From the sequence record NC_027364.1: a DNA stretch of 64,000 nucleotides; one strand, given 5' to 3'. The notes under the pieces are model-generated. The model saw only the letters and a list, made by a program, of their open reading frames with translations, ran no database searches and was not told the origin of the DNA. The position numbers were made by a program, and so were the translations under genes. Positions 18,738-43,784 of the stretch are shown here, one piece after another (positions within the stretch are counted from its first letter, which is position 1; each line of letters starts with the position of its first letter).

Positions 18738-20258
18738 TCATTTCCTTTGATTTAACCATTGCTTCATTGCATGAACACGATCAGTACCAGCATGTGTCTG
18801 TGGATTCTGTATTTCGTTTTGTGTCGTAGAGTTAGGAGCACTATCAGTATTTAGTGTTACTGTATTGTCAGGTTGCACAGATGGTGATTTAGCTGCACCA
18901 GAAAGCGAATGACGTAATGTTTGCATAGTGCTGGGTGGTAACGCCATGTTCCCTCCACCAATCTTAGAAACACCGCTGTGACGGAATCCATTACCTTCGG
19001 TTTCCATTTGTTGTACTGTAGTTGCGTGGTCAAGAACTCTCAATGAATCAATATCATATGACATACGCAAACGGGAACCTACTGCACTACTGTTACGTGT
19101 TTTTTGGAAATCAAACCATAGTTCGCCAGTTTCTTTTCGTGCCTCAATATAAATTACGTTATCAGCAGTATAAATTTTTGAAATACCACCAGCAATCTGA
19201 CTTTGACTTTTCTTATCTTCGTCCATACCACTACGGTTAAACTGAGATGCAGTGAAAACAGTTAAATCCATTTTGGTTGCAAGTGCACGTAATTCTTCTG
19301 ATACAAACTTATCTTTAGTAAATGTATTGGATTTATCATTTGGTCCAAGACGATTAGAAGTTAATAGATCCAAATAGTCCACACATACATAATCAAGTTT
19401 GATTTCCATCTTAATTTGTAATTCACGTAGATAACTTTCAATATCGTCAGTGGTTGTTACAGATTCAGGTAAGCGTTTAATACGCAACATACCACTGTTT
19501 TTACCTTCAACTTTAACAGCAAATCCAATCTTTTCAGCTTCATTTTTTACGTTACTGAGTTTTGATTCAGTCATCATACCATAGATACGAACAGCAACCA
19601 ACTCTTCAGCTAGTTCAAGTGAAATGTATGCACCATTCATACCAGCTTTCGCAAAGTTAACTGCTAAATTTTGCAGTACTACTGATTTACCACCACCTGA
19701 TGCAGCAGCAAAGATCTCTAACTCTCTACGCCCAAATCCACCGAACAGTTTGTAATCAAGAGTTTCCCAACCACTCTTAAATGACCCTTGCATTGTACTG
19801 AGTGAGCGGATTGTATCTTCAGGGTTTTCAAAAATGTCCAAACCTAACTCATTCTGTACCGTTACCAACATTGCTTCTCGGATTAGTTCTTCGATTCCAC
19901 CATATTTTTTCTGATGGACAAGTTCCATTCCTTTTTCAACGGCTAACGCTAATGCTTTATGACGACAAAATTCACCACAGGTATCAAGTACTGATTGTTT
20001 ATGTAATTCTTGAACTTCATATTGATCGTATTGATAACCACCTTTAACTTCAATATCTTTCAAAGTAGGTGATGAACTATATTTTGCAGCATAATCATGC
20101 ACGTATTGAATACTTTCATGAAATGTTTTATCAAAATATTCTGGTTTAAGGATATTTTTACAACGTACATATAAATCAGGATTACTGAAAATCTGAGATA
20201 ATAAGTATTGTTGTGCATTAATCCCATATTGTTTCACATCCACTGTGCTTTGAATCAT
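18738..20258 (-). CDS. gp41: replicative DnaB-like helicase (T4 gp41-like)
   Basis: AAASGGGKS Walker A, YISLEL, CVDYLDLL, FTASQFNR, SKIYTAD, QKTR. Confidence 0.9.
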   Translation of the reverse strand: MIQSTVDVKQYGINAQQYLLSQIFSNPDLYVRCKNILKPEYFDKTFHESIQYVHDYAAKYSSSPTLKDIEVKGGYQYDQYEVQELHKQSVLDTCGEFCRHKALALAVEKGMELVHQKKYGGIEELIREAMLVTVQNELGLDIFENPEDTIRSLSTMQGSFKSGWETLDYKLFGGFGRRELEIFAAASGGGKSVVLQNLAVNFAKAGMNGAYISLELAEELVAVRIYGMMTESKLSNVKNEAEKIGFAVKVEGKNSGMLRIKRLPESVTTTDDIESYLRELQIKMEIKLDYVCVDYLDLLTSNRLGPNDKSNTFTKDKFVSEELRALATKMDLTVFTASQFNRSGMDEDKKSQSQIAGGISKIYTADNVIYIEARKETGELWFDFQKTRNSSAVGSRLRMSYDIDSLRVLDHATTVQQMETEGNGFRHSGVSKIGGGNMALPPSTMQTLRHSLSGAAKSPSVQPDNTVTLNTDSAPNSTTQNEIQNPQTHAGTDRVHAMKQWLNQRK

Positions 20259-20280
20259 CTATGTTCCCTCATTATATGTA

Positions 20281-21336
20281 TTACATCCATTTATCCGTTT
20301 GAGCTTTAATATAAAATGGCTCATCTACTATACTATCATGTATTAATTGTAAACAAAATAACCTACCAAATCGTGCACAAGCTTCTTCAAAGTCCTTGAT
20401 ATGACGTATTGTACTACCTTCTCTTACAGCACCAAAGTCTGGGAAGGAAACACTGAATCCATTTTCAAGTGCTTGGTCTATAGTTATTAATCCATCTTTA
20501 TCTCTATCTGGAACAATAACTATTTTTTTACCTTTTTGCTGTGCATCTTTTAATACATCAATCTGTACATTTGATAATTTAAAGTTATTAGCAGATACAC
20601 CACCCATTAATGCTGCGTCTAACGGACCCTCACATACTAAAATTGTTTTTATTCGTTCATCTTTTAATAAATCATAGTTATATAGTATATTAGTACTTAC
20701 TTGATTTATGAACCTGTATGTACTTCCAGGATCTTTTAATTTATGTCGTGCAGTATAACCAATAATTTTACCATTCATGAAATATGGAATAATAAATCTG
20801 TCATACATTTTATGTTCTTTATTAGGTGACCAATATAATTCTAAGTCTAACAGATATGGGTTTCTTTCATTGACATTATGCAAAACACTTATAAATTCTT
20901 GTGGAATTTTATCTTCAGGTAAAGAAGCCCATTCCCAAAATGTTTTTGCATTTGATGGCAAATCACGTACTGTTACTCGGTCATACAATTTTGATGCAAC
21001 AGTTTCTTGTGCAGCAAAATCACCGCTGTCAACCATTTCTTTAATATAAAACTTAACTAATTCTATTTCTTTATCTTGTGCACCAAAAGAAATGAGCAAA
21101 GACTCCATATCTTTGCTCATATATTTTCCTGGTTGCCAACCAGTTTTTAAACTACAGTTAAAGCAGTTATATGAAACGGAACCATCTGCATTGAACATAT
21201 GATTACCACGGTGCTTTGTATCCGGCCTTGAATGTCCTCTGAACACACAAGCTGGACAGTTGTGTTGTGACCATGTACCAATCGCAGGTACTGGATCATT
21301 CATAATTTGTGCCATTATGTTTTGTACAGCGTTCAT
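20281..21336 (-). CDS. gp61: DNA primase (gp61/DnaG-like)
   Basis: Zn-binding CPAC...NCFNC, IIGYTAR, VCEGPLDA, VPDRDKDG TOPRIM motifs, KDFEE. Confidence 0.9.
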   Translation of the reverse strand: MNAVQNIMAQIMNDPVPAIGTWSQHNCPACVFRGHSRPDTKHRGNHMFNADGSVSYNCFNCSLKTGWQPGKYMSKDMESLLISFGAQDKEIELVKFYIKEMVDSGDFAAQETVASKLYDRVTVRDLPSNAKTFWEWASLPEDKIPQEFISVLHNVNERNPYLLDLELYWSPNKEHKMYDRFIIPYFMNGKIIGYTARHKLKDPGSTYRFINQVSTNILYNYDLLKDERIKTILVCEGPLDAALMGGVSANNFKLSNVQIDVLKDAQQKGKKIVIVPDRDKDGLITIDQALENGFSVSFPDFGAVREGSTIRHIKDFEEACARFGRLFCLQLIHDSIVDEPFYIKAQTDKWM

Positions 21337-22426: not shown

Positions 22427-22780
22427 ATGAATCAATATAACACTATTCCACCATTTATTACTGTAATCCAGTATGATGGTAAAACGTTTGTAGGTATCAT
22501 CAAAATCAAAAGCAAACAGTATACAACTCTTTACTGTTTCGATGATATGGATGATTCAATGCAAGACGAATTGTTAGGTATAGCACACGATTGGTGGTGG
22601 CAAAGTAATAGAACCATTCCAGTTTGTCTATTCTTTCAAGAAGAGATGGAGAAATTTGAACCGTACACACAGAGATTCGATACACCGTCGGTGAATTTCG
22701 TATGTGGTCCAGTAGTTTCTTTAAGCAATTTGCCACAGAAACGCATCAAGCGTCGTAATGTGGCTCTTAAGAAGAAGTAA
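22427..22780 (+). CDS. hypothetical protein
   Basis: 117-aa ORF, WWWQSNRTIPVCLF; divergent from its neighbour. Confidence 0.65.
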   Translation: MNQYNTIPPFITVIQYDGKTFVGIIKIKSKQYTTLYCFDDMDDSMQDELLGIAHDWWWQSNRTIPVCLFFQEEMEKFEPYTQRFDTPSVNFVCGPVVSLSNLPQKRIKRRNVALKKK

Positions 22781-23405
22781 GATGTTCAACTAAAGCATTT
22801 AGTTGTACAACAATCATTAAGCTATATGCGTAAGCATGTGGCTTTTTGAAATATCGTAATTTATTTCCTGCTTGGTCAGTGCCTATAGTGCTATAATCCC
22901 ATATGGTGGCTTTAACTTCGTCCCATGTGTTCATACTTTGGCACTGCCTTTTTCCTGGGCGAATCATTGCAATAAACATTGCTAGTTCGTCTATAGATTT
23001 AGGCTTCCATACATTTAATAAAGTTACATGTTTTTTAATTTGCGATAGATGTTCTACAATTTCGGGTTCTAACAATAGATCCCAATTTGGTTCCTGATTC
23101 ATTAGTTCTTTTAAATGCTCTCTATCACGAACATACATGTAAGCTGACTGTGAAAGAATATCAACTTTTTGATACCCTAACCTTTCAGCTTCTTTATATT
23201 GTATACTTGCCAATCCAGTGATTGGATCAATAGGTATATTATCAAAATGAACACCACTATTATGGGGGATTAAACCATCCTCCGTAATTTTTTCAGTACT
23301 TCGCACACATGGAAGTTTAGCGATTACGCTTTTACTATCCTTGAAGTCAATGTCAATATCAGTTCGGGCTTTTCTATAATGTTTAGAATCGGTCGAATCC
23401 TGCAT
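22767..23405 (-). CDS. miniature DNA polymerase III alpha (DnaE)-like protein
   Basis: TDIDIDF, HNSGVHF, GYQKVDIL, LAMFIAMIRPGK, YFKKPHAYAY match DnaE motifs PDFDVDF, HAGGVVI, GLVKFDFL, IALVALFRPGP, FNKSHSAAY. Confidence 0.75.
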   Translation of the reverse strand: MQDSTDSKHYRKARTDIDIDFKDSKSVIAKLPCVRSTEKITEDGLIPHNSGVHFDNIPIDPITGLASIQYKEAERLGYQKVDILSQSAYMYVRDREHLKELMNQEPNWDLLLEPEIVEHLSQIKKHVTLLNVWKPKSIDELAMFIAMIRPGKRQCQSMNTWDEVKATIWDYSTIGTDQAGNKLRYFKKPHAYAYSLMIVVQLNALVEHLTSS

Positions 23406-23712
23406 TTTTTATTTGCTCCTGTAACTGTTTAACTGTATTAGTCAAAGTTGATATTTGATTCTCTAATAATCTACAATTTTGTTTTGTCTTTGCCAATTCT
23501 TGACTTAAACTGAAAAAGCGTTCTTCGTGTCTTTCTACCAAAGAAATAATTTTTTCAATACGAGCAGGATCATGAACTTGAAATGTTTTACCATCTAAAG
23601 TTATTTCAGTAATAGATCCTTGTCTAAGTAGAGATATTTGTTTTGATTTTTGTTCTTTAGGTACAGGTACATACCCTTCTGGTATTTTATTATATATACT
23701 TTTTCCATTCAT
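23383..23712 (-). CDS. hypothetical coiled-coil protein
   Basis: Heptad-rich C-terminus. Confidence 0.6.
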   Translation of the reverse strand: MNGKSIYNKIPEGYVPVPKEQKSKQISLLRQGSITEITLDGKTFQVHDPARIEKIISLVERHEERFFSLSQELAKTKQNCRLLENQISTLTNTVKQLQEQIKNAGFDRF

Positions 23713-24419
23713 AATCCTGCCTCACATAGCATAATCTTAATTTCATCACAATCCTTTTTGTATTTTATAGTTTTGATTTCAAAATAACTTGGATCGATGT
23801 ATTTAAGTATATATTCAATTTCTGAGTTTGATAGTTTTTTAAAAAACTTATTAGTACTTTTTTTAGGAGCAAGCCAGATAATCCAAGGTGAAATTTTACC
23901 ACTCTCAATCCATGCAATTGCACGGGCAGAACTTACATTTTCAAAGAAAGTATTCCATTGTACATTCAAATTTTCAGCCCATTCAACCAGTGAGATAACA
24001 CTTCTTGCAATTGCTTCTTTTGGGTGCTCGGCACGAATTGTTTTTAATATCCATTCATCTTTTGCTTTATATGTACTCCATTCCGTGATTGGTTTGTTAT
24101 TGATAATCAAGTACTTTACAAACTCGTCCACATTAATAATATCTCTATTATTCAAATAGTATTCGGCAAAACTATAAAAATCATTAAAGTACTTTGACTT
24201 TATAAAAGCAATAAAAGGCTCTACGCCTTTTTTAAATGGGAACTTATTCAATTCCATAAATTGCATATATATACGAAAAGCCTCCATCATCTGGCGGCTT
24301 TGGCGGTCTTCGTATCGGTCACGTTTTATACATTTATGTGTGTTTACAGTTTCTTCACGTTTAAATTCACGATCACAAAATCTACAGGTATATACTTGAT
24401 TACTTGATTTCTTTGCCAT
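23709..24419 (-). CDS. hypothetical protein with N-terminal zinc finger
   Basis: CRFCDREFKREETVNTHKC (C2HC-type). Confidence 0.6.
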   Translation of the reverse strand: MAKKSSNQVYTCRFCDREFKREETVNTHKCIKRDRYEDRQSRQMMEAFRIYMQFMELNKFPFKKGVEPFIAFIKSKYFNDFYSFAEYYLNNRDIINVDEFVKYLIINNKPITEWSTYKAKDEWILKTIRAEHPKEAIARSVISLVEWAENLNVQWNTFFENVSSARAIAWIESGKISPWIIWLAPKKSTNKFFKKLSNSEIEYILKYIDPSYFEIKTIKYKKDCDEIKIMLCEAGL

Positions 24420-25245
24420 ATTTTTTACATTCTTCTTTAAACAATTTCATCATAGATTTCTTTTCATTATCTTGAAAACCATTATTGTCAAGAAATGTCT
24501 CAAATGTTTTTTTATCATACTGCAATAGAACAATTTTGTACTCATCTTCATTCATTTGAGTAGATATAGTATCAGGTTGTGAGCTTTTAATTAACTCAAA
24601 TAATTCGTTATTTGCCTTTTTGAAATTCTTAGAAAAGTTTAACCAGTTACGTGGCATTTCTTGTCCACCAATCATATCATGGACTGAACACATAAGCTGA
24701 TATACTAATTCTGGATGTTCTTTCATATCCCAAAATCCATCATTAACCATATCATTTAGCATAATAAGTTGGTATTTGACAACTTCAGTATCTACTAATG
24801 AAACAATTTCGGAACCTGATACGCCAAATTCGACCATTGAGGATATTAATTTTTGTGCGTCATCTTTTGATTGGACTGCAAATTTAATACGCCAATCATA
24901 ATCACTATGACAGTACTTAGTTACTGATGAAACATTTGTCCCTGAAGACTTTAATTCAGTAACTAGTTCAGTCAGTGCTTCTTTACCACCAGATTTCCAT
25001 TTTCCAAATACACTTTCAACTTTACTACTAGGGTAGGTTACTTGTAACGAATCATCTAAAGAGCTTACCCATCGCAAAACAGTATATGGAGTAAACTCTT
25101 TTCGTTCTTTTTCGGTCATGTCATTATAGTACTTATAATCAGCACGGTCAATGTGTTTTAGAAATTCAGCAATAGAAAAAGAATGCTGTGTTGGTTTTTC
25201 ATCATCATCGACCGACTTATTTTTAATATCACTGAAATCAAACAC
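24400..25245 (-). CDS. putative clamp loader small subunit (gp62-like) with internal insertion
   Basis: FLKHID...EFTPYTVLRWVSS and LNDMVNDGFWDM...HPELVYQL resemble gp62-family motifs. Confidence 0.5.
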   Translation of the reverse strand: MFDFSDIKNKSVDDDEKPTQHSFSIAEFLKHIDRADYKYYNDMTEKERKEFTPYTVLRWVSSLDDSLQVTYPSSKVESVFGKWKSGGKEALTELVTELKSSGTNVSSVTKYCHSDYDWRIKFAVQSKDDAQKLISSMVEFGVSGSEIVSLVDTEVVKYQLIMLNDMVNDGFWDMKEHPELVYQLMCSVHDMIGGQEMPRNWLNFSKNFKKANNELFELIKSSQPDTISTQMNEDEYKIVLLQYDKKTFETFLDNNGFQDNEKKSMMKLFKEECKKYGKEIK

Positions 25246-27740: not shown

Positions 27741-28559
27741 TTAATTAGTTCGAGTATTATATTCGTACTCAAATGTATATACTAAATCTTTATCACAGTT
27801 AGGGTTACTTGCATCTAAAATGTCACTATTAGTAATCATCCATTCAATGTAATTCAATGGAACTGTACTCATTGGCTCACCTTTGTGTTTACCAAATGGC
27901 ATGAATTGATAACGCATTGGTGTGTTGCAGAAAGTTACAATTTGCTCACCAATATCACCATTAGGTTCAATATGTCCACGTTCGATTGCAATTTCAACTA
28001 ATTTGATTAGAACCTGATAACACATGAACACATCGTCTTTTGCTGCGTGTGCATTAACAGGTCGATGAACATCACGATAACATCCAAACTTATACCACAA
28101 ATAACTTAGAGTTAAGTTTTTAAATTCAATATCTTCTGCGAACATTTTCTTAGCAAGACGAAGGGTACAAATCCATTTATTTTCATCAAGTAAGTACTGT
28201 GAAATTGAGTTACGATATTTATATTCGTTATCTACCATCATTCTACGGTCAAATTGTACATTATGACCAACAAAATACTTACGGCATCCCATAAGTGCAT
28301 CAATGTTATCTAAATCATCTTTATACCCAACACAATTAGCTACATCCTCAGTACTGATAAAGTGCACAGCAGATGCCTCTGGTGGAATATCTTTCAAGGG
28401 TTTGTATCTCAATGTATAGTTATCAATAGTATCAATGTTTTCATGTGAAGTATGTGGATACGAGATACTAAATTCAATAATATCATCTTCACTCTCAACC
28501 CCAGTAGTTTCAGTATCTAGAACTGCTACATTTGATAAAAACTCATTTAATTTTGTCAT
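27741..28559 (-). CDS. DnaQ-family 3'-5' exonuclease (ExoX-like)
   Basis: LDTETTG, VGHNVQFD, AHAAKDDV (DEDDh) and C-terminal MPFGKHKG. Confidence 0.85.
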   Translation of the reverse strand: MTKLNEFLSNVAVLDTETTGVESEDDIIEFSISYPHTSHENIDTIDNYTLRYKPLKDIPPEASAVHFISTEDVANCVGYKDDLDNIDALMGCRKYFVGHNVQFDRRMMVDNEYKYRNSISQYLLDENKWICTLRLAKKMFAEDIEFKNLTLSYLWYKFGCYRDVHRPVNAHAAKDDVFMCYQVLIKLVEIAIERGHIEPNGDIGEQIVTFCNTPMRYQFMPFGKHKGEPMSTVPLNYIEWMITNSDILDASNPNCDKDLVYTFEYEYNTRTN

Positions 28560-40778: not shown

Positions 40779-43700
40779 TTACCAAGTGAAGAATCCATTG
40801 TTTACTGACGCAGTACTTTTTTCATGAATACCAATATCCATATCCAAAATACCAAAAATATTCTCTAATTTTTTAGTTAGAACAATCTCTTCCATTTTTT
40901 CAGTATCAAATGGTAGTTCCAAGAACCATTCTGGAAGATACTCAACACAGTCAATTGGATAACCAACAGCTTTAATTCCCATAGGATTATCTTTTAAGTT
41001 ACAGACAATTACTTTTGTTCCATCCGTTACTTCTGGTACAGATTTATCATCATAAACTTCACGTAGACGGTTCCATTGGATACCAGCAAGAACGTGACCA
41101 ACTTTACACTTACCAGTTAGCTGATATTCAGCCTCTAAATTAGTGTAGTTTTTTACAGTTTTTGGTGAACCTTTTTCATGTACAGGCATATCCTTAAATA
41201 CGTCCTTAAACTCACGTACACGCTGTTTTAGCTGTTGTTCACTCTCACCTACAAGTAATGCGATTAGAGTCTCTTCTAGGAAGTTCTGGATGTATTTTGG
41301 CGTGTCTGAGCGTTTAATTTCAAGACCCATCGCTTTGATTTCACCTGGTTTACCATCAATATCTTTACGGAACCCATCTTCCCAGTACTTCAGAATTGCA
41401 TAACGTTTTTTCTTCAAGAATAGGCCACGCGAACCAACCATCTCAAGGTCTGCACCAACAATCTTACCTTTTTCAATACCAGTGTTGAACATCTCATGCA
41501 TAAATGATGGGAAAGATTCACCAACTTCTTCACCAATTTTAATATACATATCAACAATCTCTTCTTTAGATAGATTATATGGAATACCTTGTTCTTTCAG
41601 ATAATGAGTTACACTAAAGTAAACTGAGTCAGTATCACCATAAATTACTGAACCACCTTGGTGGTTATATACACCAGTAGTAATTTCATTGATACGACTT
41701 GCCATATGTTTGGTCATAGAACGTCCAGTTAATGTTACGGATTGACCTAAACGTTTGTCAAAAAAACGAGAACCTTTGTTCAATAGTGCACCATATAGAC
41801 TGTTTAGAAGAATCTTACGAATCTGTTGGTTCTGTTTCCAGAAAGCACTACGTTGTTTGAAGTAATCTTTTTCTTCTTTAGGACAGAAAATACGACCATC
41901 TTTTAGTACTAATCCGTTTTCTACAATCAACTTAGCAACTTCATCCCACTGTCCTTTACCAATTTCTTTACGAAGTAAGTATACAGGATCATTATCATGA
42001 ATATTAGTTCTAAACATTGTACCAGGGGTATAGTTTGATAGTAGTGGTTCAACTTTTTCATAGCCATTAAACTCCCAACCATCAGTATACATATGTTTGT
42101 AGTCAATGACCATTTTTTGCTGTGCTTTACGTTCAGAATACCATTGAGTTAGAATGTCAGGAATTACACCAGACTTAGACTTATCAAAAAGTGTTCCGTT
42201 TGCACTAAGTACAATAGTACTATCTTCTGCAAAAATAATATCATATAGCTCTTTGCCCGTTGCTTTAAAAGAACTCCCATCTTCTAAATCAACAATCAAT
42301 GTTTCTTCTGACTTTTCATGAACCATTGTAAATTCAACAGCAGCAAATAAACCATGCCATGCCGCAGTCCAATCTGGTTCAAATGATTTAGATTTAGATT
42401 TGTTCTTCTGTTCTTGGATTTTAGCTGCAAGATACGCATCGGTGTAATCTTGACGTAATTGACCAAGAATACATTCAGTACTCATACCCAAAGTACGTAG
42501 AACAGTAGGGTAAAGAGAGTTAAAGTCAGTACACCCAAGGTCACTTACAAGTCCTAGTACTGGATCTTGTACCCATGCACCTGCTGCTTTTGCACTAATT
42601 TTCTCATCTTCTTCTTCACCATCTTCACCATAATATTCCATTTCTGGATCAAACTCAAGATCATCTTTCGGTGCTTTGTTGAAAACAACTTCACCACGAG
42701 TATGTGCTAAGTTGATAATAGCAGTGTCGATTAGTGCTACTGAACCCATTGTTGTACTGATAAGTACACATTCTTTGTGTGCAAGTCGATTGTGTAGGTT
42801 GATATAGTCACATTTAGCATCAATCTTTTTAAGAAGAATACTATCCTGTTTAGAATAACGCAAGAAAGTAATGTAATCCTCTCTGTAAAGTTTATCCAAT
42901 GAACCTTCATAGGATACTTTATTTTCTTTAGTTACTTTTTCAGCAATATAATCTAGTTTATAAGATTGTTCAACTTGACCAGCATGTTTCTTATACAAAG
43001 CCAAATAATCAAGATGGACGCGACCTACCAGATCATATGTTTGAACAGTTTTACCAAAGTTGTCTGCTTCACGTGAATTTGGTTTTTTATTCCATAAACA
43101 CCAACGAGCAGTTGTTGCTTCATTGAAGATTTTTTTAGTTCGATTGATCATATATGGAATATCAAAGAATTCACTATTCCATCCTGAAATAACATCAGAA
43201 TCATCAATTAAACTAAAGAATTCCATAAACATTTCCTTTTCGTCTGTATATAAAATTACAGTACTGTTAGGATCGTTTGTTTCTTCATTTAGTTGGCGAA
43301 CAATATCTTGTGCTTCATAAATTTCCATATCAGCAGGTGGTAAAGTAAGTACATAATCCTTTCCAGTCCATGATTGATATAGAGAAATAGCGGTTACTCG
43401 GTTAAACGGGTCTGATGGTGGAGCATAACCAAATTTCTTATGGAAATCAGTCTCGATATCGAAGAACACGATGTTCAAATCGGGTGAACCTTTTCCCATA
43501 TATTCTTTAGCTAATGTTTTAAATGTAATGTTACAGTCACTTTCAAAAATACGTAGACCTTCACTTTTGTGTTGCTCTACACTTTTATTCATTTGAGCTT
43601 GAGTTTGAAACTCAAAATGTTTAGCCATTGTACCATAAACAGTTTTATGTGTTCCTTGTGGGGATTCAACATAATATTCATATACTGGATCTAATTCGCG

Positions 43701-43784
43701 TAGAATACGTTTACCATTCTTACGTTCAACTACATGAAGAATATCACCAGTACGTTTACGTTCCATATAAGCATCGATATACAT
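40779..43784 (-). CDS. gp43: family B DNA polymerase (gp43-like)
   Basis: Exonuclease FFDIET, GWNSEFFDIPY, YSKQD; polymerase DFNSLYP, KILLNSLYG, YGDTDS, KKRYA. Confidence 0.97.
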   Translation of the reverse strand: MYIDAYMERKRTGDILHVVERKNGKRILRELDPVYEYYVESPQGTHKTVYGTMAKHFEFQTQAQMNKSVEQHKSEGLRIFESDCNITFKTLAKEYMGKGSPDLNIVFFDIETDFHKKFGYAPPSDPFNRVTAISLYQSWTGKDYVLTLPPADMEIYEAQDIVRQLNEETNDPNSTVILYTDEKEMFMEFFSLIDDSDVISGWNSEFFDIPYMINRTKKIFNEATTARWCLWNKKPNSREADNFGKTVQTYDLVGRVHLDYLALYKKHAGQVEQSYKLDYIAEKVTKENKVSYEGSLDKLYREDYITFLRYSKQDSILLKKIDAKCDYINLHNRLAHKECVLISTTMGSVALIDTAIINLAHTRGEVVFNKAPKDDLEFDPEMEYYGEDGEEEDEKISAKAAGAWVQDPVLGLVSDLGCTDFNSLYPTVLRTLGMSTECILGQLRQDYTDAYLAAKIQEQKNKSKSKSFEPDWTAAWHGLFAAVEFTMVHEKSEETLIVDLEDGSSFKATGKELYDIIFAEDSTIVLSANGTLFDKSKSGVIPDILTQWYSERKAQQKMVIDYKHMYTDGWEFNGYEKVEPLLSNYTPGTMFRTNIHDNDPVYLLRKEIGKGQWDEVAKLIVENGLVLKDGRIFCPKEEKDYFKQRSAFWKQNQQIRKILLNSLYGALLNKGSRFFDKRLGQSVTLTGRSMTKHMASRINEITTGVYNHQGGSVIYGDTDSVYFSVTHYLKEQGIPYNLSKEEIVDMYIKIGEEVGESFPSFMHEMFNTGIEKGKIVGADLEMVGSRGLFLKKKRYAILKYWEDGFRKDIDGKPGEIKAMGLEIKRSDTPKYIQNFLEETLIALLVGESEQQLKQRVREFKDVFKDMPVHEKGSPKTVKNYTNLEAEYQLTGKCKVGHVLAGIQWNRLREVYDDKSVPEVTDGTKVIVCNLKDNPMGIKAVGYPIDCVEYLPEWFLELPFDTEKMEEIVLTKKLENIFGILDMDIGIHEKSTASVNNGFFTW

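Follow-up and report, generated by a model that had tools for sequence, protein, structure and literature searches.

A stretch of 64,000 nucleotides from Escherichia phage PBECO4 (Asteriusvirus; a 121Q/Rak2-like jumbo myovirus), here called the window, which is 100% identical to the sequence record of this phage and has its position 1 at record position 248,001, contains the gene ACQ29_gp488 (hereafter gp488), whose product is probably the C-terminal subunit of a two-subunit minimal C-family DNA polymerase that assists the B-family replisome of this phage. It is highly likely that gp488 represents the C-terminal half of a split catalytic core of DNA polymerase III alpha (Pol III alpha, or DnaE) and needs the product of a distant gene, gp449, as its other half; that gp449 and gp488 together make up an active templated DNA polymerase is, on balance, slightly favored. 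The system is already known as a published computational prediction (Iyer et al., 2021; PMC7824862). Here we document the homology, the fold, the residue conservation, the strict co-occurrence, the natural fusions and the gene context of this split polymerase, whose two components we denote the N-unit (gp449) and the C-unit (gp488).

In the mechanism that we propose, the C-unit would contribute three metal-binding aspartates (D16, D18, and D82), the adjacent lysine K80 and cut-down fingers with the RPG and KxH motifs, and gp449 would contribute the Gly-Ser, nucleotide-binding half of the Pol-beta-like palm. The two proteins would associate non-covalently, without an intein, with the active site forming at the interface, and the resulting core of about 385 residues would be devoid of the PHP, thumb, clamp-binding, OB and tau-binding parts. 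Such a heterodimer could act as a template-directed DNA polymerase of low processivity that helps the B-family replisome, for example, in primer extension, gap filling or repair.

Relationship of gp488 to DnaE

The open reading frame (ORF) of gp488 lies on the minus strand, has an AGGAG ribosome-binding site upstream of its start and overlaps the upstream gene by 23 nucleotides. The five DnaE motifs that a first-pass annotation, made from the letters of the sequence, had noticed in these 212 residues are all confirmed, in the order TDIDIDF (15-21), HNSGVHF (48-54), GYQKVDIL (77-84), FIAMIRPGK (144-152) and FKKPHAYAY (186-194). RefSeq names the protein 'DNA polymerase', it matches PHROG 11778 ('DNA polymerase') with an E-value (E) of 2e-108, and some of its relatives are annotated as 'DNA polymerase III alpha'; the surmise that similar ORFs might already be annotated in relatives is borne out by these labels.

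The gp488 sequence alone produces a sub-threshold match to the Pfam DNA_pol3_finger model (E 0.045), and a single-sequence search of the PDB gave no useful match; the orthologue from phage RsoM2USA scores above Pfam's own cut-off for the same finger model. The family is large: one search gave 785 clusters at 90% identity, and another gave 268 representatives at 50% identity. A profile built from 92 homologues matched, among PDB entries, Pol III alpha chains only (Taq, 4.4e-6; E. coli, 6.7e-5; M. tuberculosis, 1.5e-4), in three collinear blocks. In this profile, D16, D18, D20, K80, and D82 of gp488 are paired with D401, D403, D405, K553, and D555 of E. coli alpha, and, in the finger region, R149-P-G is paired with residues 639-641, K188 with K758 and H190 with H760. 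Among 90-92 homologues, with a mean column identity of about 25%, D16, D18, K80, D82, and P150 are invariant, and D20, H48, G51, R149, K152, K187, H190, and Y194 are conserved in at least 90%. Poor conservation of the aspartates, which the first-pass annotation had raised as a possible objection to its own proposal, is not observed, D16, D18, and D82 being invariant throughout this set.

Profile-profile comparison, with two intact phage DnaE proteins as the reference, is in agreement. In hhalign, residues 46-151 of the C-unit align with residues 530-668 of one of these proteins (FADO; probability 95.5%, E 1.5e-8), residue 46 onward being paired with the H-P-S-G motif of phage DnaE, and residues 96-172 of the N-unit align with residues 351-430 of the same protein (probability 96.2%, E 2e-9). 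The two aligned segments of the FADO protein are collinear and do not overlap.

The fold points the same way. The AlphaFold2 model of gp488 has a predicted local distance difference test score (pLDDT) of 96 and a predicted template modeling score (pTM) of 0.86, and Pol III alpha accounts for each of the top 13 matches of this model in a Foldseek search of the PDB; enzymes of the Pol beta, CCA-adding or cGAS type do not appear among the matches. VIA-align superimposes the model on the Taq ternary complex with Z 9.8 (model residues 6-212 on chain residues 393-841) and on E. coli alpha with Z 8.4 (13-212 on 399-784), the next unrelated fold scoring Z 3.2, and these structural alignments to the Taq and E. 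coli proteins take in about 200 of the 212 residues. The comparison by AlphaFold and Foldseek that had been recommended as a check thus recovers Pol III alpha. The likeness of gp488 to DnaE is real and above chance, and the earlier description of a drastically reduced C-family protein that keeps all three catalytic aspartates, D16, D18, and D82, is upheld by both the profile and the fold.

The extent of the reduction can be read from the alignment with E. coli alpha. A span of 386 residues (399-784) is matched by 200 residues of the C-unit, with about 186 residues deleted within it: the thumb between D405 and H511 (about 105 residues) has shrunk to 27 residues, and about 80 residues are deleted from the fingers between RPG and FNKSH. 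The chain ends at the equivalent of E. coli residue ~784, and nothing is left of the beta-binding motif, HhH, OB, the tau-binding end or the remainder of the fingers. Neither the N-unit nor the C-unit matches the PHP domain model (PF02811), and intact phage DnaE proteins do show this domain. The reported absence of the PHP, clamp-binding and OB domains therefore stands, given a model that covers only E. coli residues 399-784 and no PF02811 match. The description of gp488 as 'palm-only' has to be abandoned: about half of the chain, residues ~95-212, forms helical fingers with the RPG and KxH motifs. We also rejected gp488 as a canonical DnaE, which would have a complete palm in one chain, PHP, thumb, full fingers, the beta motif, HhH, OB and a tau-binding end, none of which it has.

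The N-terminal half and the split point

Palms of the Pol-beta type require a helix-Gly-Ser element to hold the incoming nucleotide. A scan of the whole record of a 121Q-like phage with the Pfam DNA_pol3_alpha model (PF07733) gave one match above the cut-off, a 180-residue ORF that contains G-R-G-S-S and ends in '...EFLKW' (E 2e-9 for this N-unit); no Pol III alpha match besides the N-unit was found in that record. Its PBECO4 counterpart, gp449, is located about 30 kb from gp488, about 7.6 kb beyond the window. R140-G141-S142-S143 is invariant in 43 N-units, and a joint profile pairs R140-G141-S142 with R362-G363-S364 of E. coli; the underlying joint alignment (A6) is usable apart from the last ~10 residues of the N-unit rows. 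The first-pass view of gp488 as a complete minimal nucleotidyltransferase fails on this point, the nucleotide-binding element of the palm that corresponds to E. coli R362-G363-S364 being found on gp449 and not on gp488. For the first ~95 residues of the N-unit, relatives were detected only within their own phage family.

In DnaE, the Gly-Ser helix continues via 'ERFLNPERVSMP' into 'DFDVDF', where the C-unit starts. Because the helix runs on in this way, the split point can be placed in the short linker bounded by E. coli residues ~393 and 400. N-units end 0-12 residues past EFLK, and C-units start 0-22 residues ahead of DxDxD. A split intein was ruled out, there being no spare sequence at either split end, and since the ends leave no room for one, the association of the halves must be non-covalent.

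Evidence that the two halves belong together

When 50,697 phage records were searched with tblastn, the N-unit and the C-unit were found in equal numbers in Escherichia (34/34), Pseudomonas (11/11), Salmonella (8/8), Erwinia (8/8), Xanthomonas (4/4) and Yersinia (4/4) phages. The Klebsiella counts are 11 vs 10, the unmatched record being an 86-kb fragment, and the surplus N-unit matches come from full-length DnaE genes in phages of Streptomyces and Bacillus. In each of six phage records, whole-record profile searches detected a single N-unit and a single C-unit, both on the same strand, at distances of 4.2 kb in RsoM2USA, 10.9 kb in Alishewanella phage vB_AspM_Slickus01, 29 kb in Vibrio phage 2.275.O, 30 kb in the 121Q-like phage, 43 kb in PA5oct and 182 kb in Atu_ph07; PBECO4, judged from its annotated genes, is the seventh genome with both halves. 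The Slickus01 genome is 141,644 bp in size, and an RFC clamp loader gene lies a short way upstream of its C-unit block. The split mini Pol III extends beyond the jumbo phages.

Moreover, rare single-chain forms exist in nature. Four metagenomic protein clusters, P0194, P0390, and P0391 (375-376 residues) and P0231 (336 residues), have the two halves joined at the split point; the Pfam DNA_pol3_alpha match spans the junction, and both PBECO4 halves match the fused forms by BLASTP. In one metagenomic locus (L019), the fused gene is followed by genes of the gp487 and gp486 families and thus sits, in a related phage, at the position otherwise taken by the C-unit. Scans of IMG/VR for fused forms found none. 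In an unrooted tree, the fused forms fall in two places among the split forms, which requires 2 changes, of which strongly supported branches force only 1; given this topology, we accept the fused forms neither as clearly ancestral nor as clearly derived.

Full-size DnaE can also be interrupted: in Bacillus phage Edson (L022, 2960-7305) it is annotated as three ORFs separated by gaps of 0.4-0.7 kb, which comprise PHP and the palm up to PF07733 position ~111, the palm from position ~143 with the fingers, and HhH with OB, respectively. These breaks are not those of the jumbo-phage split, and they probably reflect introns or mobile insertions.

The two halves are also predicted to assemble. Modeling of the N-unit and the C-unit as a complex returned ipSAE interface scores of 0.90, 0.90, and 0.91, and all three controls scored 0.00; the mark used for this score is reached by 58 of 80 solved complexes and by 2 of 110 mismatched pairs. 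The alignments supplied to the prediction were built from whole proteins only, with pieces of fused proteins left out. In the predicted complex, about 200 contacts are made, and the interface would take in the GRGSS loop and the EFLKW end of the N-unit together with the DxDxD strand and the KKPH motif of the C-unit; the first ~95 residues of the N-unit are likewise predicted to touch the C-unit.

Gene neighborhoods

The C-unit is embedded in a run of genes that is conserved in all six divergent phages examined: gp492, gp491, the Zn-finger gene gp490, (gp489), the C-unit, the convergent gp487, gp486, primase and DnaB helicase (Table 1). The first four genes of this run overlap or abut, and the helicase and primase ORFs (18738..21336) form the downstream end of the module. 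The N-unit belongs to a second block, in which it is followed by a gene without assignment here, a GroES-like gene, another such gene and the RFC clamp loader, and in RsoM2USA the N-unit and C-unit blocks are directly joined.

Table 1. Genes and motifs of the split polymerase and neighboring genes in PBECO4 (window positions, unless the record is named).
Feature	Position	Strand	Evidence and remarks
C-unit gene, ACQ29_gp488	22767..23405	-	PHROG 11778; 212-residue ORF with ATG start; very likely C-terminal (Mg2+-binding and template/finger) unit of split minimal Pol III alpha
D16-I-D18-I-D20, first catalytic strand (E. coli D401, D403, D405)	23346..23360	-	D16 and D18 invariant, D20 at least 90% in 90-92 homologues; PDB profile mapping
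H48-N-S-G51, beta-hairpin motif similar to DnaE H-A-G-G (E. coli H511 region)	23253..23264	-	H48 and G51 conserved in at least 90%; hhalign
K80-V-D82, third catalytic aspartate (E. coli K553, D555)	23160..23168	-	K80 and D82 invariant; PDB profile mapping
R149-P150-G-K152, finger motif (E. coli R639-P-G641)	22950..22961	-	P150 invariant, R149 and K152 at least 90%; hhalign; weak Pfam DNA_pol3_finger match at 129-162
F186-K-K-P-H190-A-Y-A-Y194, finger motif (E. coli F756-N-K758-S-H760...Y764)	22824..22850	-	K187, H190, and Y194 at least 90%; inside predicted N-unit interface
N-unit gene, ACQ29_gp449	record 239,915-240,433	same as gp488	172 residues; RefSeq 'DNA polymerase'; PHROG 11127 (E 3e-87); PF07733
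gp487, 117-residue convergent ORF	22427..22780	+	PHROG 11637; 14-nucleotide overlap with C-unit 3' end
gp489, 109-residue coiled-coil protein	23383..23712	-	PHROG 14909 (label: virion structural); 23-nucleotide overlap with C-unit start
gp490, 236-residue protein with N-terminal C2H2-type zinc finger	23709..24419	-	PHROG 11058; conserved upstream neighbor of C-unit
gp491, possible gp62-type small clamp-loader subunit	24400..25245	-	PHROG 11758; via shorter family members
DnaB-type helicase	18738-20258	-	Pfam DnaB_C
Primase subunit per RefSeq	20281-21336	-	RefSeq label; no Pfam match
Stand-alone DnaQ/epsilon-family 3'-5' exonuclease	27741-28559	-	PF00929 (E 6.7e-15); PHROG 192 'DNA polymerase exonuclease subunit'
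Family B DNA polymerase (gp43-like), RefSeq gp512	40779..43784	-	PF03104 (3.8e-23), PF00136 (1.1e-21); own exonuclease domain

The immediate neighbors differ in how widely they are retained. A small coil gene similar to gp489 is present at the same position in Vibrio phage 2.275.O and absent in PA5oct. In RsoM2USA, Vibrio 2.275.O, PA5oct, Atu_ph07 and a metagenomic locus (L007), a homologue of gp490 precedes the C-unit, and homology searches with gp490 retrieved phage relatives only. In L007, which holds the split relative nearest to the fused forms, the stop of the upstream gene overlaps the C-unit start; we considered whether this gene might be an N-unit placed directly upstream of the C-unit and rejected the idea, the overlapping gene being that of the gp490-family Zn-finger protein. 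Shorter members of the gp491 family, in RsoM2USA and Slickus01, lie directly after the RFC clamp loader and match PHROG 225 'clamp loader' (E 5.5e-7 and 3e-4); gp491 itself has no PHROG 225 match and lies about 30 kb from the large clamp-loader subunit gp445 in PBECO4. Judging by these relatives, gp491 may be a small clamp-loader subunit of the gp62 type, and if so, the polymerase halves would flank clamp-loader genes in the joined arrangement.

On the other side of the C-unit, gp487 is the sole opposite-strand gene within a long minus-strand run. Its homologues lie downstream of, and convergent with, the C-unit in Vibrio 2.275.O, PA5oct, Atu_ph07 and L007, and also beside the fused gene in L019; the 3' ends of the gp487 homologue and the C-unit (or fused) gene overlap in PA5oct, Atu_ph07 and L019 and do not overlap in the Vibrio phage or L007. 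An antisense or regulatory coupling between gp487 and the C-unit is possible. A scan for promoters and terminators gave a signal no stronger than that in shuffled sequence. The RNA sequencing runs in which the C-unit gene was found are metagenomic or carry no label.

With respect to the rest of the replication apparatus, the claim that a complete B-family replisome is encoded alongside gp488 is correct for the most part: a family B polymerase (gp512), which we presume to be the main replicase, a DnaB helicase and a RefSeq-labelled primase are in the window, and the clamp loader gene is just outside it; the sliding clamp is the part that could not be corroborated, neither of Pfam's two T4 gp45 models having a match in the 121Q-like record. 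A protein of 208 residues encoded next to the clamp loader, gp444 (PHROG 420, no assigned function), is a candidate for the sliding clamp. A stand-alone DnaQ-type exonuclease is encoded although the B-family polymerase has an exonuclease domain of its own, and may be the proofreader of the mini Pol III, which has no PHP domain.

In one metagenomic contig of 8 kb (L005, 1516-4181), which also bears a PG_binding_1 gene, the fused gene P0231 overlaps the stop of a 552-residue 'Replicase' gene of the archaeo-eukaryotic primase (AEP) type (PF03090, with helix-turn-helix domains); the two may form a compact replication module that combines a primase-polymerase with a mini-DnaE. The 'virion structural' label of neighboring genes raised the possibility that the C-unit is a virion component, which is unlikely: the PA5oct C-unit, gp264, does not carry the mass spectrometry flag that its neighbors gp262, gp258 and gp257 carry.

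Taken as a whole, the neighborhood points to DNA replication over a signaling or decoy role, by guilt by association in a strongly syntenic phage group.

Functional interpretation and alternatives

The first-pass annotation took gp488 alone to be a self-sufficient, palm-only mini nucleotidyltransferase that works outside replication, for instance in end extension, DNA modification or second-messenger synthesis. All three aspartates are indeed present, and a single-chain AlphaFold2 model with a pLDDT of 96 suggests that gp488 may fold by itself; nevertheless, the proposal seems to us scarcely tenable, with the Gly-Ser nucleotide-binding element residing on gp449, about half of the chain consisting of fingers, both halves present in 7 of 7 genomes checked, natural fusions in existence and a predicted interface at the active site. 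We likewise rejected a stand-alone enzyme of the Pol-beta superfamily at large (Pol beta/X, CCA-adding, cGAS/CD-NTase), there being no Gly-Ser motif in the chain and the significant Foldseek and VIA-align matches all being to Pol III alpha, with no Pol beta, CCA-adding or cGAS-type enzyme among those from Foldseek. Hardly more probable is a remnant without catalytic activity, kept as a structural or regulatory part of the replisome or as a decoy for the partners of host Pol III. The extreme reduction, with the loss of accessory domains that DnaE normally needs, would suit such a remnant, but the metal-binding aspartates and the R-G-S motif are invariant in very divergent homologues, which is the pattern of an active enzyme. 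As for a decoy, it would have nothing to offer to the host partners, because the DnaE regions that contact epsilon, beta and tau are all missing. Thus, the non-replicative, decoy or signaling roles that had been suggested for gp488 find no support, with the host-contact regions (the PHP/epsilon site, the beta motif and the tau-binding C-terminus) gone and a conserved module of clamp-loader, primase and helicase genes around it.

A more serious, albeit still unlikely, alternative retains the heterodimer and changes its chemistry to a non-templated one: the pair could work as a terminal transferase, as a nucleotidyltransferase linked to a primer or a protein, or in making modified DNA or a nucleotide signal. 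The Pol-beta superfamily includes many non-templated enzymes, the loss of the thumb, the clamp contact and the proofreading domain suits a non-processive reaction, and the phage already has a complete B-family polymerase. Against this stand the motifs that are kept beyond the palm, RPG and F-x-K-x-H-x-x-x-Y, which are DnaE finger motifs, with H190 paired with E. coli H760. In Pol III alpha structures, these finger motifs bind the template and the incoming deoxynucleoside triphosphate. Furthermore, clamp-loader, primase and helicase genes are around in every phage examined, and one fused form (P0231) is translationally coupled to the AEP-type replicase gene.

Several observations weigh against the two-subunit polymerase that we prefer. 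A profile of the N-unit gave no match in the PDB at E <= 0.01, and the assignment of this unit to DnaE rests on Pfam, hhalign and the joint profile. There is no evident way for a core without a thumb or a recognizable clamp contact to hold primer-template DNA. The complex score may stem from the model's memory of the intrachain contacts of DnaE, and because the prediction may recall these contacts, the score is to be read as one of likeness and not of binding. Finally, a full-text search of the literature found no biochemical or genetic experiments on any member of the family.

A bolder form of the two-subunit reading, which we regard as doubtful, is that gp449-gp488 is a working second polymerase of the replisome that extends primers or fills gaps beside the B-family replicase and is coupled, physically or by regulation, to the clamp loader, gp490 and the primase-helicase. 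If this were true, the group 2.2 phages would run a hybrid replisome with two polymerases, B plus C, and gp449-gp488 would be the smallest functional C-family polymerase core and a candidate model of the ancestral form.

Prior knowledge and comparison with known systems

The split minimal Pol III alpha of the group 2.2 jumbo phages has been described computationally by Iyer, Anantharaman, Krishnan, Burroughs and Aravind (2021, Viruses 13:63; PMC7824862) as a module of an N-terminal NTP-binding protein and a C-terminal Mg2+-/template-binding protein, whose genes lie far apart in T4-derived giant phages that encode a family B polymerase as well. These authors proposed that the split enzyme may cooperate with the B-family enzyme in the synthesis of one strand or in repair, and that it may model the ancestral enzyme, with replicative polymerases assembled from separate modules. 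Accordingly, the statement in the first-pass annotation that no function was known for such ORFs understates the literature. The system described here is the same thing and differs in nothing of kind: gp488 is its C-terminal unit (PHROG 11778) and the N-unit is PHROG 11127, and gp488 and PBECO4 show the DxD, the third Asp and the finger homology, the distant Gly-Ser gene and the family B polymerase that mark the published module. A full-text search of the literature found no other paper on the split Pol III alpha; in genome papers, the entries go no further than 'DNA polymerase III' or 'two DNA polymerases'. To the published description we add the natural fused forms, the split point fixed after 'EFLK', a predicted heterodimer with controls, the occurrence in a 141-kb Alishewanella phage and a conserved gene order that places both halves among clamp-loader, primase and helicase genes.

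If active, the two-protein core would be the smallest C-family DNA polymerase by a wide margin and would reveal which parts of Pol III alpha catalysis really requires; it would be a tractable model for the assembly of replicative polymerases from separate modules, and a large and widespread group of T4-derived phages would be using B-family and C-family polymerases together. As for annotation, the label 'DNA polymerase' is unsuited to gp449 or gp488 alone, and the two are better described as the N- and C-terminal subunits of one enzyme.

Among the known systems, the bacterial DnaE proteins (E. coli, 2HNH; Taq, 2HPI and 3E0D; M. tuberculosis, 5LEW) are the best and only significant match of the phage mini polymerase in sequence and fold, and share with it the palm catalytic residues (D401, D403, D555, K553, and R362-G363-S364 in E. 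coli) and the finger motifs. They differ in having more than 1100 residues in one chain, whereas the phage pair has about 385 in two, and in offering no detectable counterpart of the first ~95 residues of the N-unit. The split DnaE of cyanobacteria likewise comes from two distant genes. Its halves bear intein pieces and are spliced to one full-length chain; in addition to this intein, which the phage halves lack, the break is located elsewhere.

A functional analogy is offered by replisomes with two polymerases, such as those with DnaE and PolC in B. subtilis or with Pol alpha and Pol delta/epsilon in eukaryotes. In each case, a second, less processive polymerase operates beside the main replicase, as the phage heterodimer might do, its C-unit being encoded next to primase and helicase genes. 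The difference is that the main replicase of the phage would be a family B enzyme, and a putative helper that extends primers and hands off to it would be a family C enzyme.

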